A stretch of DNA of 64,000 bases from Piromyces finnis finn (lineage: Eukaryota; Fungi; Neocallimastigomycota): assembly GCA_002104945.1 (NCBI GenBank), contig MCFH01000013.1:186001-250000 (forward strand). The letters are read 5' to 3'. Positions 27,802 to 64,000 of this stretch are shown here, one piece after another. The position numbers were made by a program, and so were the translations under genes. A model generated the notes under the pieces. It worked only from the letters and a program-made list of their open reading frames with translations, made no database searches and was not told the DNA's origin. The first letter of the stretch is position 1, and the number at the start of each line of letters is the position of its first letter.

Positions 27802-28207
27802 TAAAATATATTATTTTCCTATTCTATTATATAAATTATTCAATAATTATTTTTTTTAAAAATATAAAAGTAAATTTAAAATAAATTAACTATTTTTTTT
27901 AATACTTTTCAATTGTCATAAAAAAGGAAAACGAAAAAAAAATAATTATATTATTTTCAATTTTAATAATGAAATATGAATAAATATTTAAGATGATAAT
28001 AAATAAATATATATATAATGATTTATTCCATAAAAAAAATTATAAATTACCTTTATTGATGTATCAGTATCATTTAGTTAGATTTATATTTTTTACTAAA
28101 AAAAAAAAAAAAAAAAAAAAACACAACTATAGATTTATAATAAAAAAAAAAGATTTTTAATATATGAAAAAATTAATTATAGATTTATGTATATTTTTAA
28201 AAAAATT

Positions 28208-31696: not shown

Positions 31697-33374
31697 ATGC
31701 ACTGTTCTAAATTAATTTTATTATTAATCGCTGCTTTATGCAGTATGGTTTTTGCTGTTCCAGTTAATGTCGAAAAGAGAGTAAGCAATGTTAATTAATA
31801 ATAATAAAAAAAAAAATAGAATATAATGTATAAAAGAATATTTTATATATAAAGTATTTTCAGGATCAAAAAATTAATATAAAAAAATAAGGCATAAATA
31901 AATAAAATAAAATAAATAATACAAATTGTTAAATTAGAAGTAATTGAGTATTGAATTATAGCATTTATAAATTATATTTTTAATTGATTCCATAGAAATT
32001 AATAGCAAATTAATCAATCTTTAATAATAAAATATTATTTATCAAGAATTATAATAATAAAGCAATATAATTAATAAATAAATATTAAATAATTCACCTT
32101 TAATTTAGGAAACTTCCTCTAAGGCTATTCCAACTCCATACACAAAGATTCCTCCAACATCTTCTGTTACAGTAGGTGCTTCTACAACCTCATCAAAGGT
32201 TCCACCACAAACTACTTCAAAGGTTCCACCAACTCTTACTAAGGAACCACCACAAACTACTACTAAGAATCCACCACCAGTTACTACTACTAAAGCTCCA
32301 CCAAGCATTGCTACTACTACTTCTACTTCTTCTACCAAAGCTCCACCTCCAACTAATACTACTACCAAGAGTCCACCAAAGACCATCCCAACTACTACTA
32401 CTAAGAGCGCTCCAACTACCTTCATAACTTCAAAGGCTCCACTTTCATCTACCACTTCTACTAAGAATCCACCACCATCTACTACTACAAAGAACCCACC
32501 AAAGACTGTTCCAACTACCACTTCCAAGACTGCTCCAACTACATACATTGCTTCAAAGGCTCCACCATCATCTTCTACATCAACTACCAAGTCTGCTCCA
32601 CCAGTTATTACTACTAAGGCTCCACCAGCTCTTACTACTACTACTACTGCTAAGAACCCACCACCAGTTGTTACTACTAAGGCTCCACCAGCTCTTACTA
32701 CCACTACTGTTTCTACTAAGATCCCACCACCAACTGTTACTACAAAAACTGCTCCATCTACTTATCCAACCAAGTTTACTACTGTAACTGTTCCACCAAA
32801 GACTACTACAACTACTCAACCACCAAAGATTACTACTGAAACAGTTCCACCAAAGACTACCACTACTCAACCACCAAAGATTACTACTACTACCACTTCA
32901 ACCAAGGTTATTCCAACTTCCAAGACTATTCCAACTTCAACCAAGGTTATTTCAACTTCTAAGACTATTCCAACTTCAACCAAGACTATTCCAACTTCTA
33001 AGACTATTCCAACCTCAACCAAGACTATTCCAACTTCTAAGACTATTCCAACCTCAACCAAGACTATTCCAACTTCTAAGACTATTCCAACCTCAACCAA
33101 GACTATTCCAACTTCCAAAACTATTCCAACCTCAACCAGAAAGACTACTACAACTAAAACTATAACAAGAACTACTACAACTCGTGTTTCAACTCCAACC
33201 AGTAGTAGCCAAGATTACTATTCTTGTAGAAGTGATGACTGGAACTGTAAGACTGAAAAGTCTAACCAATGTTACGCTGAATTAAATGCTTGTTGGCAAA
33301 AGCCATGGTCCGAATCTCTTGGACAAGAATGCCAAAAGATCAATGAAAGTTGTTCAAAGATCTGGTCTAACTAA
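31697..33374 (+). CDS. Secreted Thr/Pro/Ser/Lys-rich mucin-like protein with a C-terminal 6-Cys domain (exons 31697-31780 and 32109-33374; 449 aa)
   Basis: Signal peptide MHCSKLILLLIAALCSMVFA, propeptide ending KR (Kex2-type), GT-AG intron, a 422-codon exon of TTTKAPP-like repeats, ending DYYSCRSDDWNCKTEKSNQCYAELNACWQKPWSESLGQECQKINESCSKIWSN*. Not in the ORF track; only antisense or off-frame shadows are listed. Confidence 0.88.
32898..33131 (+). repeat. Coding minisatellite, 6 x 39 bp (STK[V/T]I[P/S]TSKTIPT)
   Basis: Six consecutive 13-codon units counted directly. Confidence 0.9.
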
Positions 33375-34569: not shown

Positions 34570-35173
34570 GATTAAAAAACATTTTATTCATCGAATTTAA
34601 GTATTTGATGAATAAGTTGAATGTTTGATACTCAGGTAAGTTTGTATAGTATTTAATTAGAAGAGTAATACATTTTGTTGCTGTATTTTTTTCTTTTATT
34701 CATGTATTCATGTAGTACTACTCTTCTCTTGTAAGAATCCAATGTAGTCAACTTTAGCATTTGCATTGTATTTTTATATTCATGTAGCTATTGTTGTATT
34801 GTTTCTTGTAAGAGACTGATTCACTCTACATCATGTAAAAATACTATTCACAAGCTTTCTGGTGTCGACATTCTTGATTCAAATTTTTTACCAATTTAAA
34901 TATTTAATGAAAAGTAAAGTCAAACAATTTTAGTGTCAAAAAGCGAATCGAATTTACTAACAACAAACCAAAACTAGAATTTTTAAAGAAAATTTACAAC
35001 TAGAATTCAAAAAAAAAAAAAGAAACTTTAAACAAAGCATCGTAACAATTTTTGTTCTATCCAGTACTTTTAAGAAGAGAGAGAGAGACAGATTTTTTTC
35101 CATATACGTTATATTTGTAATTTTTATTAGTATTTATTTTATATTCAATATTTTTTAATTAGAATTTATTATC

Positions 35174-38100
35174 ATGTCAGTCCTTTATATTAAAGATAAG
35201 AATTATATCAGACGTGGTACCCGGTCTTATGGTATCCCCTTAGATGATATTCGCTCCTTCTTTATCCGTGGTATTCGATCATGGTCAGTAAATATGCTAT
35301 GGGAAAAACTCGAGGTTATTCTAGAAGATAAATTTAATTCAGTTATTAGTGTTAAATATTTTCAGACTTTCAATGATCACTTTTTCTTAGTCAAGGTTCA
35401 TGGTTCATCGAAAGATTGTATTAAAATCTTACACATGTTAAAGAAGAAACTTTCAGTTACCTCAATTTCCTTTTCAGCTCGTAGTAGAAGGAATCACAAA
35501 TACACTTTTTCCACTCTCAAACGTAAAATTTTAGTTTCTAATAAACATCAACATTCTATTCAACAATCATTTCAACAATCAGTTCAACAATCTCATCAAC
35601 AATCCGATCTTCAACTAGATCTTCAACAAGATCTTCAACAAGTTTCCAATCATGAAAATATTCCAGATCTACAGCAAACACAATTTCAATCTCAACATTC
35701 AACAATTAATTCTAATAGCTCTATCAACTCTGATAACAGTTCAATAGTTGATAGTTCTTCAGTTTCACAGCCATCTAGTAATAGTTCTACTTATTCCTCT
35801 GATGCATCATCCATTAATAACGATGACTTTAATAATAATAATAATAGCAACGATTCTTCCTCATCCAACAAGCCTGATAACTTTTCTTTTTGTCTTAGTT
35901 GGAACACCAATGGGTGGAATCACGAAAAGAGAGATAGTATTAGCTATTTCACAGCTATTTTCAAACCATTATTTTTATGTTTCCAAGAAACTGGTAATGG
36001 TTCTGGATCGAATACAGATTATCCTTGTCGTGTTACTTTGCGAAACTATAGACACTTTTTCAAGAAAGCTGACGAATCAGTTCCGGGAATGAGAGGTTTA
36101 TATTTAGGTTTTCACAATTCATGTCAAGCCTCACTTGAAAACTTCTCTGGAAAGTATATTATTTCTATTTATACTTTTAGTCTCTGGAATAGATTCAAAT
36201 GCTCGATTGGTAATGTTTATATGCCTCATAGTCATCACAACATCTATGTTGATCATGCAAAGTTAGAAGTTCGCTTGTGGTTACAAACTCATTCATCCCA
36301 TCCATCGATTCTTGTTGGTGATTTTAATATGTCTAAAGTAAAATTATCCAACTGGTTATCAACTAATGGATTAGGAGATTGGGAAATTCTTCCGCTTAGA
36401 GGGTCTACTATCTCTTGGACTCGAGGTGATCAATCTTCCGACATTGACCATGCTCTTATCAATTCGAAGATGAAAGATCTTATTCACTCAGGATCATTTA
36501 TAAATAATTTTTATCCTGTATCAGACCATAAGCCACTTCTTATTAATGGTAAAATTATTCCTATGGAAGATTTTTCTAATGACTTTAATGTTCCTAAGAA
36601 AATTCTGAAATGGAATAGATTAAAATGTATTGAGGAAAAGGAATCTATTCTCAGTCATAATAAATTCCAAATACTTTCAGCAAAATCCAGCGATCCTAAT
36701 GTTTCTACAGATGAACTTTCCAAAGAGTTTACTTCAACTGCTTTTTCAATTGCAGACGAGCTCAGTATTACTTCAGCAAATAATGTTATAAAGTCTTCAT
36801 TTCATATTTCACAACAAATTTTTAATCTTCAAAAAATCAAAATGAAGTTGTATAAGAGATTTAAAAAAGAAAGAATTTATGATATAGATGAATTTATTAA
36901 AAGAATTAAAATCTACCGTAAACTCATTGATTACATCCACAAAAGATGTAATGAATTTAGGAAGCAAGAATATCTTCATTGGATTAAAACAGGATGTGAG
37001 TATATGAAGAGTCATAATCCTAAGAAGGCCTGGAAATGGATCAAGAAAACTGCAAAAATTGGAAAAGATTCTTTCTTTATTGCTCAACCAATTAAAAATA
37101 AAAATGGGGAATTAGTTGTTGCTACGGAAGAACAACTAGATGTGTGGCATGATCATTTCGAAAATCTTGCATCAGACCCAAGTGGTGTAAGTCTTGATTT
37201 GGAGCATTGGTATGAAGAACCAACGAATAAACGTTTTTCACTTCCTATGCTTGATGAGTGGGATATCAACCAAGATATTAGTATTGATGAAGTCAAGTCA
37301 GCTATCCTCACTACTCCAAATTATAAAGCATCAGGTCCGGATGGTATTCCAATTGAATTTTACAAAGCATTAGTTCCATCAAGTAATGATTCTAATAATG
37401 CGACAGATAATAATTCTTCTGGTAATACTACTTCAGATAATGATGCTCATGGTTTAAATTTTATTCTTAAATTATTCAACCGTATTTGGGATGGAGATTT
37501 CCCCAACTCATGGAATGAATCCAGTATTGTTTCTATTCCTAAGAAGGGAGATTTGACAGATTGTGATAACTATCGAGGTATATCACTTATCAATAATGGT
37601 ATTAAGTTGATTTCCAAAATTGTCACCACTAGAATCTCAGAATATGGTTTAAAGAATAATTTCATTAGACCTGAACAATTTGGTTTTCGAAAAAAGGAAG
37701 AAAGTATTAGTCTTTTCATTTCAATCCAAGAAATATGCCGTAGACGTCAATTAGATAATAAAGAGACATATTTGGCCTTTTTAGATCTCAGGAAAGCATA
37801 CGATTCAGTCCCAATCGGTAATATTCTCCATAAATTAGATTGTTTAGGAATCCGAGGTAAGAGTCTACAATTTATCAAAAATTTATATTTAACATCTAAG
37901 GCTAATGTCAAATTAGATGGACAATTCTCGAAATCTTTTGATGTGAAGAAAGGAGTCCGTCAAGGTTGCCCTCTTTCTCCTATTCTCTTTAATCTCTTTA
38001 TTAATGATATATTTAGAGAGTGCGAAGATCTAGGAGTCAGTTTAGGTGACACTCGATGCTGTGGTGGACTTTTTGCAGATGATATAGTTATTTGTGCTCC

Positions 38101-39697
38101 AACAAGAGGATGCTTAAAAAAGATGCTTAGAAGAGTTAATGAATGGGCATTGTATAATGAAATGGAATTTGGTATCCAGAAATGTTCAACGATGGTGATT
38201 CGTCCTGAATCAATAGAAAATCAGAACAAGAGAGATCCAACATTTTACTTAGCAGGACAACCCATTCCAACTACTGATTGTTATACTTATCTTGGTGTTC
38301 CATTTGATAAGAATCTGTCCCTTAAACCAGTAATTAAAGCTCTTAATAACAAGGTTTTGAAAGGGCTTTTCTCAGTCAGTAAATTCTTAAGAAATCCTAA
38401 TATTCCTATTCCCTTCAAAAAGCTAGTACTTAACTCACAAGTGATTAGCAGAGTTTCATACTTTGCACCATTACTTGGATCCAACAAAGCTAGGTCTAGG
38501 ATTGCTCAGAAGCATGTTAACAAAGGAATACGATGGGTTGCCGGAGTTCATAAAGCTGTATCGTTTATATCTTTATACTCTATTTCAAAAGATTTGAATA
38601 TTCCTCCATTGTCAGCCAAATGTGCGTTAGCTCAGGTTAGATGTTTTAACAAATGGAAAAACTCAAATTGTATTATCTCACACCTTGTCAATTACATTCC
38701 TAAATTTAGAAAATACACGTGGTGCAAATCAAGTAGGACACTTGATAAAAAACTAAAGAAACATGGAGATGTTAAAGCAGTTAAAAACTTTTATTGGAAA
38801 GATCTCAAAGGGAATTCAATCAAAGCGCAATATTATGATGATAATAAATTTATTGAAACTAAAGATTTTATTAAATTATGTTATGAGTACCCAGAGTTTG
38901 CCTATGGCTTCTACTGGCTATTGAAAGCAAGAAGCGGATACAAGTTGGATGCTAGAGTTGCCAAAGCTGCCAAATTTGTTGATCCAGTTTGTCCTAACTA
39001 CTGTCCATGTTGCAAGTGTGGAGATCAAAGTATTAAACATTGGTTATTAGATTGTCCAACATTTAGAGATATCCGTATTAAACATTATGATTCCATAGTC
39101 CAGCTATTAAATTTTTTCAGTCAACGTAATTCCAATAGTCCTATCAATAATAATGAAATTGATAATATCAGTAGAGATAGTAATAACATTAATAGTAATA
39201 GTAACAATAGTAATAGTAACAATAGTAATAGTAACAATAGTAATAGTAACAATAGTAATAATAACAATAATAGAAATAATAATATTAGTAATGATAGCAA
39301 TAGTGAAGATAATAATTCTAATTTAGATAGTAATTTAGTTAATGATAGTAATAGTTCTAATAATCCGGTGAATATTAATGTGTATGATTATTCTAGTGTG
39401 TGCAGTAAAATATTTAAATTCCTTCTTGGGGGAAGAAGTTTTAACAATATTAATTACAATTCAAGGGAATGGAAAGAACTTTGTAAGCGTCAGATTCAAT
39501 CTGATACTAACGAAGGAACACCATTCTTGACGGTAACCGCGGAACTTCTAACCAAAATCATGCCTTTTGCTATTGGCCAGCAATGGTCAATGTTCAAAAG
39601 GTTTGAAGCAACATCCAAGAGCGTCAATGCTGAAGAAACAGTAAGACAGGCCAGGAGGGCCAGCGCAACCAATGGAGATCATAATTTTGTTCCATGA
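35174..39697 (+). CDS. LINE polyprotein: N-terminal RRM-like domain, AP endonuclease, reverse transcriptase, C-terminal CCHC zinc finger
   Basis: APE motifs SWNTNG, LCFQET, VGDFN, SDIDH, SDHKP; RT motifs SGPDGI, NYRGISL, QFGFR, FLDLRKAYDSV, GVRQGCPLSPILF, FADD; zinc finger CPCCKCGDQSIKHWLLDCP. Confidence 0.97.
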   Translation: MSVLYIKDKNYIRRGTRSYGIPLDDIRSFFIRGIRSWSVNMLWEKLEVILEDKFNSVISVKYFQTFNDHFFLVKVHGSSKDCIKILHMLKKKLSVTSISFSARSRRNHKYTFSTLKRKILVSNKHQHSIQQSFQQSVQQSHQQSDLQLDLQQDLQQVSNHENIPDLQQTQFQSQHSTINSNSSINSDNSSIVDSSSVSQPSSNSSTYSSDASSINNDDFNNNNNSNDSSSSNKPDNFSFCLSWNTNGWNHEKRDSISYFTAIFKPLFLCFQETGNGSGSNTDYPCRVTLRNYRHFFKKADESVPGMRGLYLGFHNSCQASLENFSGKYIISIYTFSLWNRFKCSIGNVYMPHSHHNIYVDHAKLEVRLWLQTHSSHPSILVGDFNMSKVKLSNWLSTNGLGDWEILPLRGSTISWTRGDQSSDIDHALINSKMKDLIHSGSFINNFYPVSDHKPLLINGKIIPMEDFSNDFNVPKKILKWNRLKCIEEKESILSHNKFQILSAKSSDPNVSTDELSKEFTSTAFSIADELSITSANNVIKSSFHISQQIFNLQKIKMKLYKRFKKERIYDIDEFIKRIKIYRKLIDYIHKRCNEFRKQEYLHWIKTGCEYMKSHNPKKAWKWIKKTAKIGKDSFFIAQPIKNKNGELVVATEEQLDVWHDHFENLASDPSGVSLDLEHWYEEPTNKRFSLPMLDEWDINQDISIDEVKSAILTTPNYKASGPDGIPIEFYKALVPSSNDSNNATDNNSSGNTTSDNDAHGLNFILKLFNRIWDGDFPNSWNESSIVSIPKKGDLTDCDNYRGISLINNGIKLISKIVTTRISEYGLKNNFIRPEQFGFRKKEESISLFISIQEICRRRQLDNKETYLAFLDLRKAYDSVPIGNILHKLDCLGIRGKSLQFIKNLYLTSKANVKLDGQFSKSFDVKKGVRQGCPLSPILFNLFINDIFRECEDLGVSLGDTRCCGGLFADDIVICAPTRGCLKKMLRRVNEWALYNEMEFGIQKCSTMVIRPESIENQNKRDPTFYLAGQPIPTTDCYTYLGVPFDKNLSLKPVIKALNNKVLKGLFSVSKFLRNPNIPIPFKKLVLNSQVISRVSYFAPLLGSNKARSRIAQKHVNKGIRWVAGVHKAVSFISLYSISKDLNIPPLSAKCALAQVRCFNKWKNSNCIISHLVNYIPKFRKYTWCKSSRTLDKKLKKHGDVKAVKNFYWKDLKGNSIKAQYYDDNKFIETKDFIKLCYEYPEFAYGFYWLLKARSGYKLDARVAKAAKFVDPVCPNYCPCCKCGDQSIKHWLLDCPTFRDIRIKHYDSIVQLLNFFSQRNSNSPINNNEIDNISRDSNNINSNSNNSNSNNSNSNNSNSNNSNNNNNRNNNISNDSNSEDNNSNLDSNLVNDSNSSNNPVNINVYDYSSVCSKIFKFLLGGRSFNNINYNSREWKELCKRQIQSDTNEGTPFLTVTAELLTKIMPFAIGQQWSMFKRFEATSKSVNAEETVRQARRASATNGDHNFVP

Positions 39698-40725: not shown

Positions 40726-43013
<2,288 letters not shown>

Positions 43014-43087
43014 TTCTTTTATTTATTATATTATATTATTTTGTTATTAAATAAGTTGTAAATTTTATTGTAATTAAAATTTTTAAA

Positions 43088-51500: not shown

Positions 51501-52269
51501 AAATATTTAAACATTAATTTATTAAATATAGAATTACCATTTTATTTATTACTTTTAAGTAAAAAGTATTATAGAATAAAAGGAAACACTTTAAAGAAAA
51601 AAAAAAAACACTATATAACGTTTTTAAAATAATATAGAAATTGAAGTTTATACATATAAACAATAAAGTATTGTGTTTTATAAAAGGTAATAAACGATAT
51701 TCATATATACTGTTAAAACCTTTATTTATATCTTTATTTATTTAGCTATATTAAATAAATTATTTATTTTTATTTATAATGGCGATTATATTTGTTTAAT
51801 ATGCATATTTTTTTATTGAAATATTTATGTAATTATTATTTGATAAAATGATAGTGAGTGAATGAAAATTTTATTATTAAAACTGTTTTAAATGTTTTTT
51901 TTTAAATAGAATAAAAAAAAAGATCAAAATTTTAAAATATTTTTTTTTATTGTACATTTTATTTTAAATGATATTAAATATATGGTGATATATTACTAAT
52001 TTAAAATTAACAATAAATTTTAATATATATTTGAAATAGACAAAGATAAATCTATTAGCTAATACTTCGCACTTTTATCAAAAAAAAAAAAAAAAGTAAA
52101 TAAAAGCTAAAAAATAAAACAAACAAACAAGAAAAAAACATAAATAAATTAATAAATAAATAATATAATACTAAATATTATTATTTTTTTATGTATTCTA
52201 ATATAGTTACAAAAAAAAAAAAAAAAAAACATAAATATCTATTACTTTAAAGATAAATAAACTATAAAT

Positions 52270-54200
52270 ATGGCATCAAGAATTATAAATATTCCTCCAA
52301 GAGAAAACAGAAAGTCCAAGGAAGCTTGGGCTTTAATTGATAGTACAGGTCCATGTGAAGAAATGAAGTTTAACTTAACACAAAATAAATTAGCTAAACT
52401 TGAACATTCTGGTGCATATGTTTACCATGATTATTCTGAATGCATTGATATTGCTTGTCCAGCAGATAGAGTAAGAAAATAGATAATAATAGATAATGAA
52501 TAGGATGAAAAATTAATTTATATATAATAAAAAAAGTTTTAAAAATAGTTTATGATTCAAGAAGAAAAAACATTTTTGATATTTTGTAGATATATAAAAA
52601 GCAAAGTTATTAATTTTTAAAAATATATATTTATTATATTATAGAAAATTAATTTCAGTTCTACTTCTTACCTTGGTTTAAATCAAGACCCAAGAATGAA
52701 AGAAGCTGCTTATAAAGCTATTGAACAATATGGTTTAAGTCCACTTGGTAGTGCACCATTTGGTGGTTTAACCAATCTTCATGAAAAATTAGGATACCGT
52801 TTAGGTAAAATTTATGGATTACCATATGGTATCACTACTTCAGGAGGTAATTAATTTGAGAGATATAGAAGGAGCAGCAATATCAATTATACATTTTTAT
52901 GTTGTATTAATTCATTATTTAAACTAAAATATTAAAAATTTAGCTACTCTTGCTAATATGACTATCATTCCTTTAATTGTTGGTGCAAAGGATTTCGTTT
53001 TTTCTGATGAATTAAATCATACTACTATTATTGATGGTATTGATTTATCAAAGGCTAAAATGATTAAATATAAGCATAATGATATGGAAGATTTAGAAAA
53101 AAATGTTAAATTAATTCATGAAAAATTCCCAGATAGAGTAAAATTAATTATTTTTGATGGTGTTTTCAGTATGGAAGGTAAGTCAACTCAAATAATGAAT
53201 TTTATAATTTTAAAATATAATAAATTTTAAAAAAAATAACAACTTTTAATATTTTTTATTTATATATAAACTTTATTTGAATAGGTGATGTATGTGATTT
53301 ACCAAATATTGTTAGAATTGCAAAGCAATACAATTGTAAAACTATGATGGATGAATGTCATGCTCTTGGTATTATTGGTAAGTTTTTAATAAAATAATAA
53401 TGGTGTGGCATTAAGAGAGAAAAACATATAAAAAAGTTTTTATATTTCTTTCTATTAGTAGTATTGTAGAAAAAAAATTTTTTTTAAAAGAAGTAATAAT
53501 AATTAAAAAAAAAGATATAGCATTATATTAAATTTAAGAATACAAAGATAAATAGTTATCATTTTTCATAATAAAAAAAGAATGCATTATTATTCTTTCC
53601 CCATCAAAATAATATTATTAATATATCTAATACAAAATGCAATGAATTTTATTTATCTATTATAATAAAAAAAAGGTCCTCATGGTTATGGTACTTTAGA
53701 TTACTTCAATATGCCAGGATCAGTCGATTTTGTTACTGGTACTTTAGTAAAGTCTCTTTGTGCCCATGGTGGTTATATTTGTTGTAGAAGAGATTATCAA
53801 AATAAGTTAGAAAATTCTAGTGGTATTATTTTCTCTACAAATAATACTCCAGCATATGCTGCTACTTCATTAAAGGCCCTTGATTTAATTGAAGAAGAAG
53901 GTCCAAATAGTGTTCGTGCTAGACTTCAACGTAATATTAAACATTGGAAGGATGGTATTCGTAATCTTGGTTTTAAGATTATTGAAGGTGTCAGTTGTGT
54001 TTGTCCAATTATGATTTATGATGAAATTAATGGTCTTAAATTCCAAAGACGTTTATATGAAGAAGGTTTAAACTTCTCAGCTGTTGCTTTTCCAGCTGTT
54101 CCAAAAAATCAAGCTAGATTAAGAACTACTATTTTAGCTTCACTTACTGATGACGATATTGATGAAGCTTTAAGTATTATTGGACGTGTTGCTCAACAAG
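52270..54200 (+). other. Alpha-oxoamine synthase (AONS/KBL/SPT/ALAS family, class II PLP aminotransferase fold) domain of the PKS
   Basis: KINFSSTSYLGL, FSDELNHTTIIDG, YKHNDMEDLE, IIFDGVFSMEG|DVCDL, MDECHALGIIG, VTGTLVKSL (PLP Lys), GGYI, AFPAVPKNQARLR. Confidence 0.92.
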
Positions 54201-57200
54201 AATTCCCACAAATTTTAGTAAACAAATCTACAAAAATTTACCCAGCTCTTCCAAATCCATTAAAACCAAGAGTTAAAGATTTTGATACTTATGAAAAGAA
54301 GAGTTATCTTCACCCAATTAATAAACCAAAATATGCTGTCATTGGTGTTGGTTGTCGTTTCCCAGGTAATATTAAATCAAAGGAAGATTTCTGGGAAATG
54401 CTTACTACTGGAAGATGTCTTACCTCTGAAACTCCAAAGGACCGTTGGGATTCTGCTGAATGGTATAACAAAGAGCCAAAGAGAGGTACTGTTCAAACTA
54501 CTAGAGGTGCATTTATGGAAGATGCCTTCTACTTTGATAATAAGTATTTCTCAATTTCTCAAAATGAAGCTAAGGAAATGTCACCAGAACAACGCTGGTT
54601 ATTAGAATTAGCTGTTGAAACCTTTGAAGATGCTAACATTAATCCAAAGAAATTAAAGGGTTCTAGAACTGGTGTCTTTGTCGGTTCTTCCGGTATGGAT
54701 TTCGTAGCAGCTCAAATTTCTCATGCTAATGATTTAACTCAACACTCTGCTACTGGTCTTGAACTTTCTATTCTTGCCAACCGTATCTCATACTACTTTG
54801 ATTTAAATGGTCCATCTATTTGTACTAACACTGCATGCTCTGCTTCTATGACTGCCTTAAATCTTGCTATTAATTCCATGATTACTGATGATTGTGATGC
54901 AGCTCTTATTGCTGGTACTAATTTATTATTCACTCCAGGTAGTTGTGTTGCATACTCTCAACTTCGTGTTGTCTCTGTTGATGGTTCTTGCAAACCATTT
55001 GATAAGAGGGCTGATGGTTATTCTCGTGTTGAAGGTGCTGGTATGTTATTGATTAAGCCATATGAAAAGGCTGTAAGAGATGGTGATAAAATTTATTGTG
55101 CTATTTTAGGTAGTAGTACTAATGAAGATGGTCATACCCCATCTCTCACTATGCCATCCTATGATTCTCAATGTAAATTATTAACTCATGTTTGTGAAAA
55201 ATTCGACATTGATCCAGCCTCAATTGATTATGTTGAAGCTCACGGTACTGGTACTGCAGTTGGTGATCCAATTGAAGCTCGTTCAATAGGTTATGCCTAT
55301 GGACGCAGAGTTCGTGAAGGTAAACAAATTAAGACTACTCGCCCAGGTGAGACTGAGGAAATTCTTGATCAACCAACCTATCCATTGATCATTGGATCTA
55401 GTAAGGGTAATACTGGTCATGGTGAATATTCTAGTGGTATTATTGGTATGATTAAGGCTGTTTTAATGCTTCACCATCGTACTATGGTTCCAACTATTGC
55501 TCATGAGGAAATGAACCCAGCCATTGATGCTGAAGGTTTAGGTATTAAGGTTGCTACAAAGTTAGAACCATGGACTACTCCGCACACTTTACGTATTGCT
55601 GTTAACTCTTTTGGTTTTGGTGGTTCAAATGGTAATGCCATTTTTGAAGAAGTTGTTAATGAAAAGCCAGAAGATTTAGTTATGAATATCAAAGATGCTA
55701 AGAATCCAGTTGTAGCTACCTTCTCTGCTTACGATGAAAAGACTCTTCAACAACTTTTAAAGAAGTGGAATACTGAAATTCCAAATGAAGATTTATTACA
55801 AGAACTCTTTATTTCTTCTCAATGTCGTGAATATGAAAGTATGCGTTCTGCTATGATATTTAGTTCTATTGACGAAGCTAGATCTCTTATTCAAGAAATG
55901 GCAGAAGGTGATGTTGAAAAGTTCAAGAGACACGAAAAGATTTACATGAAGCGTGTTAAAATCAGTGAAAAACCAGGAATTAACTTTGCTTTCTCTGGTC
56001 AAGGTTCTCAATTTATAAATATGGGTAGACGTATGTATCAAACCAATGATCTCTTTAAGAAGGTTGTCGATTATTGTGCTGCTGTTCTTGTTACTATTAA
56101 TGGCGGTGAAGATATCTTTGAAAAGTATAGCATCTTTAAGGGAGATGTTGCTCAAATTAGCGAAACCGATCTTTCTCTTCCACAATTCTCTGTTCTTGCT
56201 ATTGGTATTGCTCAAATTGCTTTAATTGAAGTTTGGAAGTCTATGGGTGTTACACCAAAGGCTGTCTATGGTCATAGTATGGGTGAAGTTGCTGCTGCTT
56301 ATGCTGCTGGTGTTCTTACTATCGATGATGCTGTCTTATTATTATACATGCGTGGTCATATTCTTGCTCAATTAGATGGTACTGGTAAGGGTATGTTAGC
56401 TCTTGGATGCTCAGTTGAAAATGCTCAACGCTTCATGGCTAATAAGCCAAATGTTTTCATTTCTGCTGTTAACAGTGCTAATTCTATTACTTTAGCCGGG
56501 GATCTTGAACAAATTAATGCTGTTGCAAGAGAAGCTCAAGCTGAAAAACTTTTTGCTGTTGTATTAAAGGTTAAGCAAGCTTTCCATTCTCCATACGTTG
56601 AAGGTGCTGAAAAGGCTTTCAAGGAAAGTATTAGAGGCATTGGTGAACGTACTAAAGCTCCAAATTGTAAGTTTGTTTCTGCTTGTTTTGGTCAAGAATA
56701 TGAAGGTCCATTCGATGAAAATTACTGGTGGGCTAATATTCGTAATCCAGTTAGTTTCCATGCTGCTGCTTCTATTGCTACTCAATTCTCTAAGCGTGTT
56801 TTAGAAATTGGTGCTCATCCAGTTCTTGGTATGTATCTTAAGGAAATCTATGGTAAGGATAACGTCTACTTCTCCTTATCTCGTAAGATGGATGACGTTG
56901 ATAGTATGTGCCGTACTACTGCTAACTTATTCATTGAAAATGCTGTTGATATCCTTGACTACACTCAAATTTGGGATGGTAAGGTTGATCTTTACAATGC
57001 AAAGTCTGGCGTTGCTGTTCCATTAAAGAAGTTACGTTCTATTAATTATGTTCTTCCAAAGCATGTATGGAACCGTAAAGAAATTAGAAAGGTTTACACT
57101 GACTATATTGGTACCAATCCAATTCATGAAATTTACACCACTCGTGAAAATGTTCTTAAGGATATGGGCGTTACTGAAGATGATCTTAAGCTTCTTAAGA

Positions 57201-60200
57201 GCATTAAGGAAGGTAAGGCTACTGTCCCAACCTCAGTAAAGCCAAAACCTGTATCTGCTGCAGCTCCAAAGACCACCTTTATTCCAAGTCAATCTAACAT
57301 TGTCTATAGTTCTGGTAATCAATGGAACTTTGAAAATCATCGTTACCTTCAAGACCATGTTGTTAACAAAAAGATTGTTCTTCCAGCTTGTGGCTCTGTT
57401 AGTCGTGCCTTTAGTGGTTATGCCAATGCTCATCCATTAATGATGGCTCAAAAGGCTATCATTTCTCTTGAAGATTTGAAATTCGATCGTATGGGTATCT
57501 TTGATAAGGCTATTGACTTTAACACTGTTACTGGTCCAATGCCACTCACCTTTAAGGAAGAAGGCAGTACCAATACTTATAAGGTTATATTTAATGAAGA
57601 TACTGAAGTTTCTTCCGGTAAGTTTAACGATGCAGATGAAACTGAAGCCTTAAAGCAAATTCCATCTGCTGATTACTTTATCAAACAATGTTCTTCTGTC
57701 AGTGGTGGACAAGGCGTTACTCCAGACATGTTCTACAACCGTACTCATGAAATTGGTTTAGACTATGGTAAGGAATTCCGTTTATATAAGGCTATACGTT
57801 CTGGTAAGAATGTTGCTTATGGTAAACTTGCTGTTAGTAAGGAACACCAAAAGATGGTTTGTCATCCAGCTGTCTTAGATAACTGTATTCAGATTGTTTT
57901 TGCTTCTGGTGTTGCCTCTGGTGATTGTCAAGCCCTTCCAGTTGGTATGAAGAAGGTTGTTTTAAGTCAAGGTGGTCATTTCCCAGAAGGAACTCTTATT
58001 GTTGCCACTGAATTAGTTAAACAAGATATTAAGGAATGTGTCTCTAATGTTTACATTTATGATGAAAACAAGAATATATTTGGTTTTGTTGAAGGTTTAA
58101 CTATGTCCTTCCGTCGTGGTAGAGCTGAAAAGGCTATTGATTGGATTCATCTCTTAGGTTATGAAGAAAAGGCTCCTACCTCTACTGAAAAATTACCAGT
58201 TGCTTGCCGTAATGTTATTGTTATGTGTACTGAAAGCCAACAAAATGAAGCTAACGCTCTTGCTACTCATATTGGTAGTGTCATTGCTGGTTTACAAAAT
58301 ATTTGGGTATTACCAAATAACCATGTTGAAAATATTCAACAAATGGTTGAAAGTGCAATGATTAAACCAAAAGAAACTTTTGTTATTGATGCAAGCTTTA
58401 TTGATAGCCCAGAAATTGATCGTGCCTTCATGACTCTTAAAACTATGGTTAACTATGAAATCCCAGTTTTATTTGCTGCTTCAAAGTACATCAAGGATGA
58501 ATCTGCTAACTCTCGTGCTATTGCTACTAGTAAAGCTGTTATTGGTATGGTTCGTGCTGCTCGTGCTGAATGCCAAGTTCCATTATTTACTGCTCACGCT
58601 AATCGTTTTGAAGATTTATACTTGGCTGTTTTACGTAGTGATCTCACTATGGATGATCCAGAAGTTGAAATTATTGATGGTAAGGTTCAATGTGTTCGTT
58701 TCATGAAGTTAGACAAGGTTCCAGATGTTAAGTCTACCAATGTTAAGTTAGAAAAGAGTGCTAATGGTCAAATCGGTCAAATGAAGTTTACCGAATGTAT
58801 CGGTCTTCCAAAGTATAATGATGACCAAATTGTTATAAAGACCAAGGGTGTTTCTATGCAATTCAAGGATATCATGACTGCCATGGATACCTTGGTTGGT
58901 TTTGATGACTATGAACCAGGTATGGAATGTATTGGTCGTGTTGTAGCTATTGGTAAGAATGTTGCCAGTGATCCAAAGAATGTATTACAAATTGGTGATC
59001 CAGTCGTTGCTTTTGCCCACAAGTATGGTCATCTTCTTCGTACCTATGGTGTAGCTGATCCACTTTCCGTTCAAAAGATTCCAGAAAGTATGTACAAGGT
59101 TGAATATGCTGGTATCTTTATTGTTTTCATTACTGCTTACTACAGTTTACACGTTCGTGCTGGTGGTATTAAACCAGGTCAAACCATTTTAATTCATGCT
59201 GCTGCTGGAGGTGTTGGTCAAGCTGCTGTTAAGTTATGTCAACTCTGGGGTGCTAACATTATTGCCTCAGCATCAGCTTCTAAACAACAATTCCTTCGTG
59301 ACACCTATGGTATTGAACATGTCACCAACTCTCGTGATCCAGAACAATTCTACAGTGATGTTATGAAATGGACCAATGGTAAGGGTGTTGACTTTGTCTT
59401 AAACTCTCTCTCTGGAAAGAGTCTCCGTATGGGTATTAAATGCTTAAAGAACGGTGGTAAGTTTGTTGAAATTGGAAAAACTGATATCTTGAATGATAGT
59501 CAATTAGGTTTACATTGTCTCCTTAACAATATTTCCTTCATTTCTTCTCACATTGACCTTCTCAACAACCAACAAATGAGTTTCTACAAGAACATTATCT
59601 TTGATATGTTTAAAACCGGAAAACTTACTCCAATTCCAGCCAAGATCTTCTCAGCTAACAAATATAAAGAAGCCTTCTTCTATCTTGCTAGTGGTAGAAA
59701 TGTTGGTAAAACTTGCATTGAATTCCAAGACAATGTTGCCATTGACTGTAATCCAGTAACTATTGTCGATCCAAACTTAACCTATCTTGTTACTGGTGCC
59801 TTTGGTGGTGTTGGTTTAAGAGTTGTTCTTTGGTTAGTTAGCCGTGGTGCAAAGAACCTTTTATTAACTACTAGTGGATCAGTTGAAAAGCAATATGAAC
59901 AACCAATTATTCGTTCTTTAATTGAAAAGGGAGTCAATGTTATGATTAAGACCTGTGATATCACTGATTACAACAATGTTCAACAATTATTCCAACAAAC
60001 TCAACCAAGAGTTGCTGGTGTCTTCCATTTAGCTAATCGTTTTGCTCCAGGTTTAATTAGTACTTCTGACCTTGCTTTACTTCGTAAGGGCTTTAATGCT
60101 AAGGCTGAAGGTGCTTGGAACTTACACAAGGTTACTGCTCAAAAGCAACATCAAGTTCAACTCTTTGTTGTCTTTTCTTCTATTCTTGACGTTTTAGGTA

Positions 60201-63200
60201 ACCGTGGTCAAACCGCCTATGGTGCTGCTAATGCCTTCTTAAGTTCTATCATTGATCACCGTAGAGAAAATGGTCTTTCTGGTAATTGTATCGCTCTTCC
60301 AGCTATGCGTGGTTCTGGTTACTTGGCTAAATGGAACCAAACTAAGCAATCTAAGGAATTTGAACAATTAATTGCCCTTCTTGATACCGATGAATTAGTC
60401 AATGTTATGGATGGTTTAATTCGTTACGATCTTCCAGCTAATGTTTACATGGCTAAGGATTGGTCAGATATGTCTTACAATGCCGAATTTGTTGCTCCAG
60501 TAACTCGTAGTATTTCTCACTTACGTGGTGTTAACCCACTTCCAATGGTTACTTATCCAATGGAAAAGAAACTTGATCTTCCATCCTTAATTAAGAATGG
60601 TGGTGGTTTCTATATGGCTGAACCAACTTCTATTCCAAAACCATCTGCTGCTCCAGTTCGTTCCTTTACTCCAGTTTCTGTTAAATCATTCAGTCCAGCT
60701 CCAATAAATCCAGTTCCAGTTCGTTCCTTTGTTTCTGGTTCTGCTGCCCAAGTTGCTGCACCAGTTTCTGTTCAACCAAGAGTTGCTCCAGTTGCCGCTC
60801 CAGTTGCTGCTGTTCAACCAAGAGCTGCTCCAGTTCCAGTTGCTGCTTCAGCTCCAGTTGCCCCAGTTGCTGCTGCTAAGCCATCTAGTGGTCTCAACAA
60901 GGATAAATTAACTAAGGATATCTCTGAAAAGTTACAAAGTATGTTAGGTTTAATTGATGAAGAAATTGATGTTACTATTCCACTTCGTGTCTACGGTTTA
61001 GATTCCTTAACTGCTATGGAATTAACCAAATGGATTGAAAGTGAAATGAATATTGAATTCAGTCAAAGTCAATTATTAGGAGATGATATTACTACTGAAG
61101 ATTTAATTAATGTTATTATGGAAGGTTCATCTTCAGCACCAGTTGCAGTTCCAGCTGTTGCTCAACCAGCTGTTGCTCCAGTTGTTGCTCAACCATTTAT
61201 TGCTCCAGCTCCAGTTTCTGTTCCAGTTTCTGCCCCAGTTGCTGTTCAACCAAGATCATTCCAACCAACTCCAGTTGCCTCTGTTCAACCAAGAGCTGCT
61301 CCAGTTCCAGTTGCTGCTTCAGCTCCAGTTGCCCCAGTTGCTGCTGCTAAGCCATCTAGTGGTCTTAACAAGGATAAATTAACTAAGGATATCTCTGAAA
61401 AGTTACAAAGTATGTTAGGTTTAATTGATGAAGAAATTGATGTTACTATTCCACTTCGTGTCTACGGTTTAGATTCCTTAACTGCTATGGAATTAACCAA
61501 ATGGATTGAAAGTGAAATGAACATTGAATTCAGTCAAAGTCAATTATTAGGAGATGATATTACTACTGAAGATTTAATTAATGTCATTATGGAAGGTTCA
61601 TCTTCAGCTCCAGTTGCTGCACCAGTTGCTGCACCAGTTGCCGCTCCAGTTGCCGCTCCAGTTGTTGCTCAATCATTTGTTGCTCCAGCTCCAGTTTCTG
61701 TTCCAGTTTCTGCCCCAGTTGCTGTTCAACCAAGATCATTCCAACCAACCCCAGTTGCTTCTGTTCAACCAAGAGTTGCTCCAGTTCCAGTTACTGCTTC
61801 AGCTCCAGTTGCCCCAGTTGCTGCTGCTAAGCCATCTAGTGGTCTCAACAAGGGTAAATTAACTAAGGATATCTCTGAAAAGCTACAAAGTATGTTAGGT
61901 TTAATTGATGAAGAAATTGATGTTACTATTCCACTTCGTGTCTACGGTTTAGATTCCTTAACTGCTATGGAATTAACCAAATGGATTGAAAGTGAAATGA
62001 ACATTGAATTCAGTCAAAGTCAATTATTAGGAGATGATATTACTACTGAAGATTTAATTAATGTCATTATGGAAGGTTCATCTTCAGCTCCAGTTGCTGC
62101 ACCAGTTGCTGCACCAGTTGTCGCTCCAGTTGTTGCTCAATCATTTGTTGCTCCAGCTCCAGTTTCTGTTCCAGTTTCTGCCCCAGTTGCTGTTCAACCA
62201 AGATCATTCCAACCAACCCCAGTTGCTTCTGTTCAACCAAGAGTTGCTCCAGTTCCAGTTACTGCTTCAGCTCCAGTTGCCCCAGTTGCTGCTGCTAAGC
62301 CATCTAGTGGTCTCAACAAGGGTAAATTAACTAAGGATATCTCTGAAAAGCTACAAAGTATGTTAGGTTTAATTGATGAAGAAATTGATGTTACTATTCC
62401 ACTTCGTGTCTATGGTTTAGATTCCTTAACTGCTATGGAATTAACCAAATGGATTGAAAGTGAAATGAATATTGAATTCAGTCAAAGTCAATTATTAGGA
62501 GATGATATTACTACTGAAGATTTAATTAATGTTATTATGGAAGGTTCATCTTCAGCTCCAGTTGCTGCACCAGTTGCTGCACCAGTTGTCGCTCAATCAT
62601 TTGTTGCTCCAGCTCCAGTTTCTGTTCCAGTTTCTGCCCCAGTTGCTGTTCAACCAAGATCATTCCAACCAACTCCAGTTGCCTCTGTTCAACCAAGAGC
62701 TGCTCCAGTTCCAGTTGCTGCTTCAGCTCCAGTTGCCCCAGTTGCTGCTGCTAAGCCATCTAGTGGTCTCAACAAGGATAAATTAACTAAGGATATCTCT
62801 GAAAAGTTACAAAGTATGTTAGGTTTAATTGATGAAGAAATTGATGTTACTATTCCACTTCGTGTCTACGGTTTAGATTCCTTAACTGCTATGGAATTAA
62901 CCAAATGGATTGAAAGTGAAATGAACATTGAATTCAGTCAAAGTCAATTATTAGGAGATGATATTACTACTGAAGATTTAATTAATGTCATTATGGAAGG
63001 TTCATCTTCAGCTCCAGTTGCTGCACCAGTTGCCGCTCCAGTTGTTGCTCAATCATTTGTTGCTCCAGCTCCAGTTTCTGTTCCAGTTTCTGCCCCAGTT
63101 GCTGTTCAACCAAGATCATTCCAACCAACTCCAGTTGCCTCTGTTCAACCAAGAGCTGCTCCAGTTCCAGTTACTGCTTCAGCTCCAGTTGTCCCAGTTG

Positions 63201-64000
63201 CTGCTGCTAAGCCATCTAGTGGTCTCAACAAGGATAAATTAACTAAGGATATTTCTGAAAAGTTACAAAGTATGTTAGGTTTAATTGATGAAGAAATTGA
63301 TGTTACTATTCCACTTCGTGTCTACGGTTTAGATTCCTTAACTGCTATGGAATTAACCAAATGGATTGAAAGTGAAATGAACATTGAATTCAGTCAAAGT
63401 CAATTATTAGGAGATGATATTACTACTGAAGATTTAATTAATGTCATTATGGAAGGTTCATCTTCAGCTCCAGTTGCTGTTCCAGCTGTTGCTCCAGCAC
63501 CAGTTGCTGCCCCAGTTGCTGTTCAACCAAGATCATTCCAACCAACTCCAGTTGCCGCTCCAATAACTGTAGTATCTGCTCCTGTAGTTGCTCCAACCCC
63601 AATTAGATCAATCCAACCAACTCCAGTCGTTGCTCCAGTCGTTGCCCCAGTTGCCGCTGCTAAGCCATCTAGTGATCTCAACAAGGATAAATTAACTAAG
63701 GATATCTCTGAAAAGTTACAAAGCATGTTAGGTTTAATTGATGAAGAAATTGATGTTACTATTCCACTTCGTGTCTACGGTTTAGATTCCTTAACTGCTA
63801 TGGAATTAACCAAATGGATTGAAAGTGAAATGAATATTGAATTCAGTCAAAGTCAATTATTAGGAGATGATATTACTACTGAAGATTTAATTAATGTTAT
63901 TATGGAAGGTTCATCTTCAGCTCCAGCTGCTGTTTCAGTTGCTTCCCCAATTCAATCAAAATCATTTCAACCAGTAAGTGCAATGAATAGTATATTATCT
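52270..64000 (+). CDS. Alpha-oxoamine synthase-fused highly reducing type I PKS (AOS-KS-AT-DH-ER-KR-ACP x>=7), 3'-partial; exons 52270-52470, 52645-52846, 52944-53177, 53285-53377, 53676->64000 (~3685 aa in window)
   Basis: Four GT-AG introns with compatible phases. All motifs checked in exon 5 lie in one frame through to the window end (..SAMNSILS). AOS, KS, AT, DH, ER, KR and ACP motifs are recognisable. Missing from the ORF track because there is no stop codon in the window. Confidence 0.95.
54332..55650 (+). other. Ketosynthase domain
   Basis: YAVIGVGCRFPG, MSPEQRWLLE, GPSICTNTACSAS (Cys 54836), VEAHGTGT (His 55241), SSKGNTGHGE (His 55418), NSFGFGGSNG. Confidence 0.95.
55975..56930 (+). 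other. Acyltransferase domain, probably malonyl-CoA
   Basis: FAFSGQGSQ, GHSMGE (Ser 56276), QAFHSP, NIRNPVSF, LEIGAHPVL. Confidence 0.92.
57300..58120 (+). other. Dehydratase domain
   Basis: YLQDHVVNKKIVLP (His 57356), LDYGKEFR, HPAVLDNCIQ (Asp 57878). Confidence 0.85.
58740..59730 (+). other. Enoylreductase domain
   Basis: GMECIGRVVAIG, TAYYSL, ILIHAAAGGVGQAAV, GVDFVLNSL, GGKFVEIGK, GRNVGK. Confidence 0.92.
59780..60420 (+). other. Ketoreductase domain
   Basis: YLVTGAFGGVG (NADPH), CDIT, AKAEGAWNLH (Lys), FVVFSS, GQTAYGAAN (Tyr 60218). Confidence 0.92.
60900..63910 (+). repeat. Seven tandem near-identical ACP domains separated by Pro/Ala/Val-rich linkers
   Basis: GLDSL phosphopantetheinylation Ser codons at 61004, 61475, 61955, 62423, 62879, 63335 and 63788; spacings 471, 480, 468, 456, 456 and 453 bp, all multiples of 3. 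Confidence 0.97.

Follow-up and report, generated by a model that had tools for sequence, protein, structure and literature searches.

A single gene at the 3' end of a 64,000-nt stretch of contig MCFH01000013.1 from the anaerobic gut fungus Piromyces finnis (hereafter the window) encodes a megasynthase in which an alpha-oxoamine synthase (AOS), dependent on pyridoxal phosphate (PLP), stands in front of a polyketide synthase (PKS). One mRNA runs across the junction of the two parts. We consider it probable that the protein is a single-module, iterative, fully reducing synthase of the kind of fatty acid synthase (FAS) and mycocerosic acid synthase (MAS), whose N-terminal AOS off-loads the chain onto a small amino acid, giving a 2-amino-3-ketone.

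The order of the domains, as given by Pfam, is AOS, ketosynthase (KS), acyltransferase (AT), dehydratase (DH), enoylreductase (ER), ketoreductase (KR) and then seven acyl carrier proteins (ACP) within the window, beyond which the gene extends. The match of the AOS to Aminotran_1_2 is split: positions 82–162 of the profile are in exon 3 and positions 203–361, with the PLP lysine, are in exon 5 (an orthologue matches the same family at 1.2e-39). Exon 5 also matches KS (2.4e-72), AT (6.6e-50), PS-DH, ER (ADH_zinc_N), KR (2e-44) and seven PP-binding domains (3.1e-67). The AOS contains His160 (ELNH), Ser210 (FSMEG), Asp235 and His238 (DECH), Lys269 (GTLVKS) and Arg393 (ARLRT), all of which line up with catalytic residues in KBL and in the serine palmitoyltransferase (SPT) of Sphingobacterium multivorum; the residue set of the family (Schiff-base lysine, stacking histidine, pyridine-nitrogen aspartate, O3' histidine and carboxylate-binding arginine) is complete. 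The active sites of the PKS part are also intact by motif (Table 1), and one KS-AT-DH-ER-KR-ACP module of this kind fits an iterative, highly reducing type I PKS or FAS-like enzyme.

The gene consists of five exons on the forward strand, the ATG being at 52270. The window is very AT-rich, with a GC content of 13–17% between genes and of 35–41% inside the megasynthase gene. The list of open reading frames (ORFs) contains a stop-free frame of 3444 amino acids that runs on the forward strand from 53669 to the end of the window; when four short upstream exons are joined to this long frame through canonical GT..AG introns, the product has 3685 amino acids and no stop. The C-terminal half of the AOS, the KS and the entire PKS are in the single exon 5, so the AOS–KS junction is independent of any splice.

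Three RNA-type runs (X1–X3, from one organism and two studies), whose contigs were compared with positions 51800–56800, agree with this gene model. In each of the three, one contig of 1711 nt spans positions 52244–54595 with 0 mismatches and drops exactly the four predicted introns; it reaches about 260 nt into the KS, and overlapping contigs extend further downstream. The fraction of the words sampled from 52200–55200 that is found in the three runs is 0.74, and the exonic share according to the gene model is about 0.75. Two of these runs have almost no depth over the introns, and in the third it is far lower than over the exons. An earlier note, made on this DNA from its sequence, had read one spliced frame AOS-KS-AT-DH-ER-KR-ACPs from the ATG at 52270, and the start, the domain order and the residues are all correct in the light of the gene model, Pfam and the motifs. 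The splicing that it read, and the continuity from the AOS into the KS, are found in the RNA contigs, and the separate AOS and PKS transcripts that it named as the contrary outcome are not seen: a single contig runs from the 5' untranslated region (UTR) to the KS.

In run X4, from another study (2022), a low-depth contig at 52942–53287 lacks introns 1 and 2 and retains intron 3; it differs from the window by one substitution and by one inserted A at 53228. It may be unspliced pre-mRNA, or come from a slightly different strain. Regarding composition, the comparison of the AOS part with the PKS part shows no sign of recent transfer in GC or in GC3 (the GC content of third codon positions), and the codon composition is fully host-like.

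The fusion is shared with other gut fungi. When 5.8 billion protein clusters were searched by word index, the AOS–KS region as query gave three clusters with PF00155 and the full PKS set among the best 120 of 3057 matches: that of Anaeromyces robustus BCR32DRAFT_248107 (3733 amino acids, 95% identity over the query), that of Neocallimastix californiae LY90DRAFT_512986 (4276 amino acids, 94%) and a third one with a JGI representative (92%). The remaining matches among these 120 are bacterial modular PKSs that align over the KS only. Further members of the clusters come from N. lanati (two paralogues), N. sp. 'constans', N. californiae (502166, in the third cluster) and Piromyces sp. E2 (a fragment), and the database name of the cluster members is 'hypothetical protein'. 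The full-length orthologues, from Anaeromyces and three Neocallimastix species, have the same domain layout. Their identity to the window protein is 0.94–0.95 for the AOS, 0.94 for the KS, 0.91 for the AOS–KS linker, 0.90–0.92 for the ER, 0.89–0.90 for the KR, 0.86–0.87 for the AT, 0.82–0.84 for the DH region and 0.62–0.66 for the tether. The PLP lysine and all other AOS motifs are kept in seven of seven full-length proteins, at a constant distance from the KS. Judging from these identities and from this spacing, the AOS is constrained like the KS, and the protein is under strong purifying selection. The AOS–KS linker, in which there are no indels, looks structured rather than floppy.

These genes have been seen before under another heading. 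Swift et al. (2021, PMC8106346) assigned A. robustus 248107, N. californiae 512986 and 502166, C. churrovis 489529 and P. finnis 411080 to PKS family 1, which is present in all four genera that they studied, is transcribed, and has every copy detected by proteomics; they proposed that the family has an important conserved function, and suggested the regulation of the life cycle. The text of that paper does not contain 'aminotransferase', 'oxoamine' or 'sphingo-', its supplements contain neither 'aminotransferase' nor PF00155, and it names no product for the family, whose database labels are 'hypothetical protein' or 'Type I PKS'. In the literature, our searches turned up nothing relevant on PKSs that have an AOS at the N-terminus, nor on aminotransferase domains within the PKSs of Neocallimastigomycota. 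As for the database models, those of the orthologues P0003 and P0395 begin at MPGSVDFVTGTLVKS, inside exon 5, so that the four small 5' exons and most of the AOS are missed, and the model of N. californiae 512986 lacks 13 residues near the N-terminus. Such defective 5' models may explain why the fusion went unremarked.

The AOS matters because of what the rest of the protein lacks. Pfam finds no methyltransferase, thioesterase or reductase domain in the part of the protein that is in the window, or in the complete orthologues. The latter contain 7, 8 or 10 ACPs, end 63 residues past the last ACP serine, and have no release domain other than the AOS. Since the chemistry of AOS enzymes consumes an acyl thioester, and since the AOS is the sole candidate for a release activity, off-loading by the AOS is the most economical reading. 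The sequence thus supports, as a hypothesis, the earlier interpretation that a reduced, unmethylated chain is off-loaded onto an amino acid.

The PKS part points to the type of chain. The closest solved relatives of the core, from KS to KR, are MAS (1.9e-172), the FAS-like Dictyostelium PKS16 and animal FAS, from which we predict an iterative, fully reducing, fatty-acid-type synthase. The ACP array is the other conspicuous element. The cores of the seven ACPs in the window are at least 98.8% identical, each with the serine of a GLDSL motif, and they are separated by tethers of 67–76 residues, of which 79–86% are Pro, Ala, Val or Ser; in the orthologues, extra and more divergent ACPs are found at the 3' end of the array, just before the stop. 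In polyunsaturated fatty acid (PUFA) synthases, productivity is correlated with how many tandem ACPs there are (PMC9702510), and by analogy the many ACPs of the gut fungi suggest a high throughput. Three things, namely the 7–10 ACPs, the fact that the protein is detected in culture and its very strong conservation, point to a lipid building block that is made at high flux and matters for fitness, and not to a trace metabolite.

From all this we infer the off-loading step, the type of chain, the amino acid, the downstream steps and the biological role, as follows. The AT would load malonyl units onto the tandem ACPs, and the KS, KR, DH and ER would make from them a long acyl-ACP, saturated and unbranched. 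Held on its long Pro/Ala/Val tether, an ACP would bring the acyl thioester to the AOS dimer, which would adjoin the KS dimer; the length of the tethers and the conservation of the linker agree with an AOS dimer that is docked by that of the KS and to which the ACPs travel. The AOS would form a PLP aldimine with a small amino acid, most likely serine, possibly alanine or glycine, and a decarboxylative Claisen condensation would then produce a long-chain 2-amino-3-ketone of the 3-ketosphinganine type and free the ACP. A separate ketoreductase and an N-acyltransferase would convert this ketone into a lipid resembling sphinganine or ceramide. In favour of such a route, dihydrosphingosine has been reported as a fungal product of C. 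churrovis (PMC12471499), a result that does not by itself identify the source enzyme. The expression 'one-gene pathway' that was used in the earlier note is overstated, in that a separate 3-ketoreductase would still be required.

The relatives of the AOS tell which branch of the family it belongs to. Its best solved matches, around 1e-66, are KBL (3tqx, 2.5e-67, and 1fc4) and S. multivorum SPT (3a2b and 8guh, about 9.5e-66), with which all catalytic residues align; the eukaryotic LCB2/SPTLC2 chains are far weaker (1e-43 to 1e-47). Stand-alone AOS homologues are 36–41% identical. In an exhaustive phmmer search of 1.84 billion representatives, with 2912 matches below 1e-30, the top match is P0241, a stand-alone AOS of 447 amino acids that is 46% identical and has the same unusual DECH motif. 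We considered that P0241 might be a truncated fusion and treated it as stand-alone, the 1.7-kb contig having a stop, about 200 nt of non-coding sequence and no KS frame. In trees of 179 and 75 AOS domains (FastTree and IQ-TREE, with SH-like and SH-aLRT supports), the fungal clade joins P0241, P0351 and P0368 with a support of 99 in both programs. P0368 is in a bacterial operon in which an AOS, a fatty acyl-AMP ligase (FAAL), an ACP and an acyl-CoA dehydrogenase are encoded; P0351 is a bacterial AOS (locus L003, 1622–4218) immediately followed by a Glyco_transf_21 gene, of the ceramide glucosyltransferase family, and this locus suggests a compact bacterial pathway to a glyco-aminolipid. The next sister in the tree is a FAAL–AOS fusion beside a short-chain dehydrogenase/reductase (SDR), and the nearest neighbours whose gene context is readable (P0351, P0368 and P0355) are all bacterial. 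This grouping, together with the FAAL, ACP and glucosyltransferase genes around the relatives, places the predicted enzyme in a bacterial-type, lipid-associated branch that is tied to acyl activation of the FAAL type, and not with LCB1/2. The off-loading hypothesis is strengthened in this way, since the relatives of the AOS sit with FAAL-type domains and lipid-type genes and the PKS core resembles MAS, PKS16 and FAS.

Several points weigh against this reading. The AOS scores below every NCBIfam equivalog cut-off that we tried: 319 bits for a cut-off of 460 and 260 for 493 with the KBL models, 299 for 426 with BioF, the 8-amino-7-oxononanoate synthase model, as well as 289 for 640 (Bacteroidota SPT), 232 for 500 and 177 for 670 with the bacterial SPT models NF047600, NF047599 and NF047603, respectively; it is therefore not assignable to SPT. 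Its pocket is atypical. When the alignment is read against the residues described for S. multivorum SPT (PMC10196870), Asn52 is replaced by Thr, Ala79 by Leu and Arg82-Phe83 by Ala-Pro, so that the loop A-G-S-R-F of SPT is L-G-S-A-P here; the SPT-like Gly-Ser (Gly80 and Ser81 in S. multivorum) is kept, with Ser-Val in its place in KBL. The sequence does not reveal which amino acid is the substrate. The seven longest ORFs of the upstream 52 kb include no ketoreductase, SDR, ceramide synthase or transporter, and the locus is one of conserved housekeeping synteny, not a tailoring cluster. An N-terminal chain-releasing domain is without characterised precedent, and the catalytic function of the megasynthase is a prediction. 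Last, in a survey from 2026 these fungi are scored as having SPTC1, SPT2/3, KDSR and ceramide synthases, with counts in A. robustus of 1 for SPTC1, 1 for SPT2/3 and 2 for KDSR, which, being based on Pfam, might include PKS-fused domains. If the canonical SPT, KDSR and ceramide synthase are present, then the megasynthase would be a second route, the purpose of which is unexplained.

Two other explanations share the chemistry of off-loading onto an amino acid and differ in the role of the product. In one of them, which we give a small chance, the chain length may differ and the product is a diffusible amino-ketone signal, similar to the alpha-hydroxyketone autoinducers of CqsA and LqsA, that regulates the cycle of zoospore, rhizoid and sporangium. 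This would agree with the life-cycle regulation that Swift et al. proposed for the PKS family (PMC8106346) and with the lack of tailoring genes nearby, and the AOS family does include the synthases of CAI-1 and LAI-1 (CqsA matches at 7.7e-26 in the PDB, and NF005526 at 176 bits). On the contrary, CqsA-type enzymes are among the weakest matches of our AOS, the FAS- and MAS-like core suggests long chains, and 7–10 tandem ACPs in a protein that is detectable in culture point to a high flux.

In the other, to which we would lend about the same slight credence, the product is an antimetabolite, a sphinganine analogue directed against rumen microbes or protozoa according to the logic of fumonisin, sphingofungin and myriocin. 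Fungal pairs of a highly reducing PKS and an AOS do make such inhibitors (PMC7376913 and PMC13612406), the sphingofungin enzyme SphA (PDB 9pep) matches our AOS at 6.7e-22, and gut fungi compete with bacteria (PMC8406330). SphA-type enzymes are distant from our AOS, however, no tailoring, resistance or export genes are clustered with the megasynthase gene, and the oxygenases that decorate such toxins are lacking in these anaerobes; a cross-genus identity of 94–95% within a housekeeping synteny is atypical for secondary metabolism.

A change in the direction of the AOS reaction has also to be weighed. The best NCBIfam and PDB matches are KBL enzymes (glycine C-acetyltransferases), whose physiological reaction is thiolysis, and the N-terminal domains of PKSs normally load; it may be that the AOS is a loader, which cleaves a 2-amino-3-ketoacid in the retro-Claisen direction and passes the acyl starter to the ACP thiol. 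We find this very unlikely: the KBL score is itself under the cut-off, the pocket has the Gly-Ser of SPT where KBL has Ser-Val, no threonine dehydrogenase partner is encoded nearby, the nearest relatives are fused to FAAL-type AMP-binding domains or in operons with them, and the enzyme would be left without any release mechanism. Less probable still is a catalytically idle AOS that serves as a dimerisation module, a scaffold or an amino-acid sensor, a trans-acting enzyme releasing the chain, because every PLP-binding and catalytic residue is intact in the seven full-length proteins and the domain is as conserved as the KS. It is thus the intact and conserved residues, the lack of another release route and the FAAL-linked relatives that disfavour the last two explanations, and that leave off-loading by the AOS as the reading we prefer.

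The chemistry of this off-loading is already known from two-gene systems, namely the bacterial SgaA/SgaB (2025) and the fungal pairs of a PKS and a stand-alone AOS. The former, by which sphingoid bases of PKS origin are established for bacteria, is not cited in the earlier note. In Pseudomonas fluorescens MYb115, the iterative type I PKS SgaA makes the chain, which is then joined to serine by SgaB, an AOS whose SPT activity has been demonstrated, to yield 3-ketosphinganines, the SgaA/SgaB/SgaC system leading to sphinganines; 6101 clusters homologous to SgaAB are reported (PMC12134224). Both components, iterative PKS and AOS, are likewise present in the gut fungi, where they are on a single polypeptide. 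SgaAB differs in being bacterial, and in consisting of two separate genes with a clustered ketoreductase, whereas no SDR is among the seven longest upstream ORFs of the gut fungus; the accessible text of PMC12134224 describes neither a tandem ACP array nor an N-terminal fusion. The likeness of the two systems is one of proposed logic. In the fungal pairs, such as Fum1/Fum8 and the sphingofungin PKS with SphA, an AOS also releases a reduced polyketide onto an amino acid to give sphinganine analogues, but the partners are separate proteins from clusters with tailoring genes, and the SphA match is distant when compared with that of KBL (6.7e-22 vs 2.5e-67).

Other systems combine some of the elements on one polypeptide. 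SxtA and the embedded AOS of the RedL/PigH type are PLP enzymes fused to carrier-protein machinery, and they act on an ACP-bound acyl group; in these, as in all the embedded AOS domains surveyed in PMC3870968, the AOS comes after the carrier protein, at the C-terminus, whereas in the gut fungi it precedes the KS and is about 2200 residues before the first ACP. KBL and SPT share the AOS fold's catalytic residues, as described above, and differ in that the gut-fungus AOS is under the family cut-offs, has another pocket loop and is fused to a PKS. PUFA synthases have 6–13 tandem ACPs on flexible linkers (PMC9702510), but in the arrangement KS-MAT-ACPn-KR-DH, with KS/CLF and FabA-type DH subunits. 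MAS, Dictyostelium PKS16 and animal FAS resemble the gut-fungus enzyme in having iterative, fully reducing KS-AT-DH-ER-KR cores. None of these three architectures is known to include an AOS. FAS has a single ACP, and releases its product by a thioesterase.

The order of the domains is what appears to be specific to the anaerobic gut fungi, with an AOS before the KS and 7–10 tandem ACPs. In our searches of 5.8 and 1.8 billion proteins, we found no AOS upstream of a KS outside these fungi. Among the 150 best AOS representatives, all the proteins that also contain a KS have it upstream of the AOS. A search with the AOS region restricted to proteins of 2050–6500 amino acids gave the fungal proteins and one bacterial protein, P0391 (2891 amino acids). 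P0391 is a bacterial KS-AT-DH-ER-KR-AOS megasynthase, as are P0291 and P0289, and these resemble the fungal protein in that a single polypeptide carries both an AOS and a reducing PKS core. Their AOS is C-terminal, and P0391 is only 32% (KS-AT) and 36% (AOS) identical to the fungal protein, which points to an independent fusion; P0391 was accordingly rejected as an ancestor. Regarding novelty, the earlier note is right that the N-terminal position is unusual, an AOS before a KS being found in our searches only in anaerobic gut fungi, with the qualification that these genes were on record before as PKS family 1.

In the ESM Atlas, there are Actinomycetota clusters of about 1.1–1.6 thousand amino acids with a KS and an AOS on a single protein; for two of them, of about 1.1 thousand amino acids, the domain order is not given there. 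On the megaplasmid pSCATT of S. cattleyicolor (Streptomycetaceae; locus L007, 4897–7954), a gene for a KS only is followed by an overlapping AOS gene. This actinomycete combination of KS and AOS looks like a separate, uncharacterised system.

Table 1. Features of the megasynthase gene in the window, with residue numbers of the spliced gene model
Feature	Position	Strand	Basis
5' UTR (extent covered by the RNA contigs)	52244..52269	+	RNA-derived contigs (runs X1–X3) start at 52244, 26 nt before ATG
Exon 1 (residues 1–67; ATG, N-terminal segment, AOS start)	52270..52470	+	Gene model; joint 52470>52645 in 4 runs
Intron 1 (174 nt, GT..AG, 13% GC)	52471..52644	+	Gene model, RNA contigs
Exon 2 (AOS: NFSSTSYLGL, LGSAPFGG pocket loop)	52645..52846	+	Gene model, RNA contigs
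Intron 2 (97 nt, GT..AG)	52847..52943	+	Gene model, RNA contigs
Exon 3 (AOS: His160 ELNH, Ser210 FSMEG)	52944..53177	+	Pfam Aminotran_1_2 3e-09 on exon 3 alone; RNA contigs
Intron 3 (107 nt, GT..AG)	53178..53284	+	Gene model, RNA contigs; kept in one low-depth X4 contig
Exon 4 (AOS: Asp235/His238, DECH)	53285..53377	+	Gene model, RNA contigs
Intron 4 (298 nt, GT..AG)	53378..53675	+	Gene model, RNA contigs
Exon 5, unbroken (AOS C-terminal half, linker, KS, AT, DH, ER, KR, ACP array)	53676..64000+	+	Stop-free frame; Pfam
AOS (PLP; residues ~66–420, exons 1–5)	52465..54205	+	Pfam, PDB matches
PLP-binding Lys269 codon (GTLVKS)	53750..53752	+	Aligns with Schiff-base Lys of KBL and SPT
AOS–KS linker (residues 421–463, in exon 5)	54206..54334	+	91% identity to orthologues, no indels; RNA contig crosses
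KS (Cys631, TACSAS, at 54836–54838; His766, HGTGT; His825)	54335..55498	+	Pfam, motifs
AT (Ser1111, GHSMG; QAFHS, malonyl-type)	55985..56854	+	Pfam, motifs
DH (His1471, HxxxKxxxxP; Asp1645)	57320..58105	+	Pfam, motifs
ER (nucleotide motif GGVGQAA)	58820..59713	+	Pfam, motif
KR (nucleotide motif GAFGGVG; Tyr2425)	59780..60310	+	Pfam, motifs
Tether from KR to first ACP (147 residues, second half Pro/Ala/Val/Ser-rich)	60446..60886	+	Sequence composition
Tandem ACP array (7 ACPs)	60798..63943	+	456-bp DNA period, 6.8 copies, 92% matches

The genes upstream of the megasynthase are those of the housekeeping synteny mentioned above: the PIG-X and GNAT neighbours match the list given for the cluster of C. 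churrovis (Dataset S3 of PMC8106346). The PIG-X/PBN1 gene, which codes for a subunit of a GPI mannosyltransferase, is on the reverse strand (40729–43022) as two open pieces; what separates them is probably an intron, which contains a long low-complexity poly-Ile/poly-Asn-Tyr run (41681–42103). An ORF on the reverse strand (27016–27810) has a weak match to GNAT acetyltransferases (2.1e-4), and a GNAT gene is at the corresponding place in the C. churrovis list. A frame of 1512 amino acids with a reverse-transcriptase domain (RVT_1, 1.2e-35; 35159–39694, forward strand) represents a retroelement insertion that separates the PIG-X gene from the GNAT gene; the order of these two genes is otherwise as in the C. 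churrovis PKS1 cluster list. There is also a repetitive frame of 421 amino acids, rich in Ser, Thr, Pro and Val and with no Pfam match, at 32109–33371 on the forward strand; long antisense frames overlap the same repeat.

For PKS family 1, which is found in all four genera of anaerobic gut fungi surveyed and is known to be transcribed and translated, off-loading by the AOS provides a testable hypothesis about the product. If it is true, the megasynthase would be the first PKS-derived synthase of sphingoid bases in a eukaryote, and the first megasynthase with a chain-releasing AOS upstream of its KS. This bears on how far a tethered ACP can reach and on where release domains can be placed when PKSs are engineered.

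As regards the organisms, the finding touches the diversification of sphingolipids in strict anaerobes, for which the 2026 survey scores all lipid desaturases and hydroxylases as absent, and the question of a role for such amino-lipids among the organisms of the rumen, comparable to that of the SgaAB products in the worm gut. A bolder idea, which we think has little chance of being right, is that the megasynthase is not a side pathway and that it is these fungi's own high-flux, O2-independent route to long-chain bases. Were the ER to be skipped in the final cycle, for instance, the result would be a 2-enoyl-ACP and hence a delta-4-unsaturated base, with no need for an O2-dependent desaturase, an enzyme that is lacking in these fungi. 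Should this be so, the entry step of an essential eukaryotic lipid would have been rebuilt on a PKS chassis.

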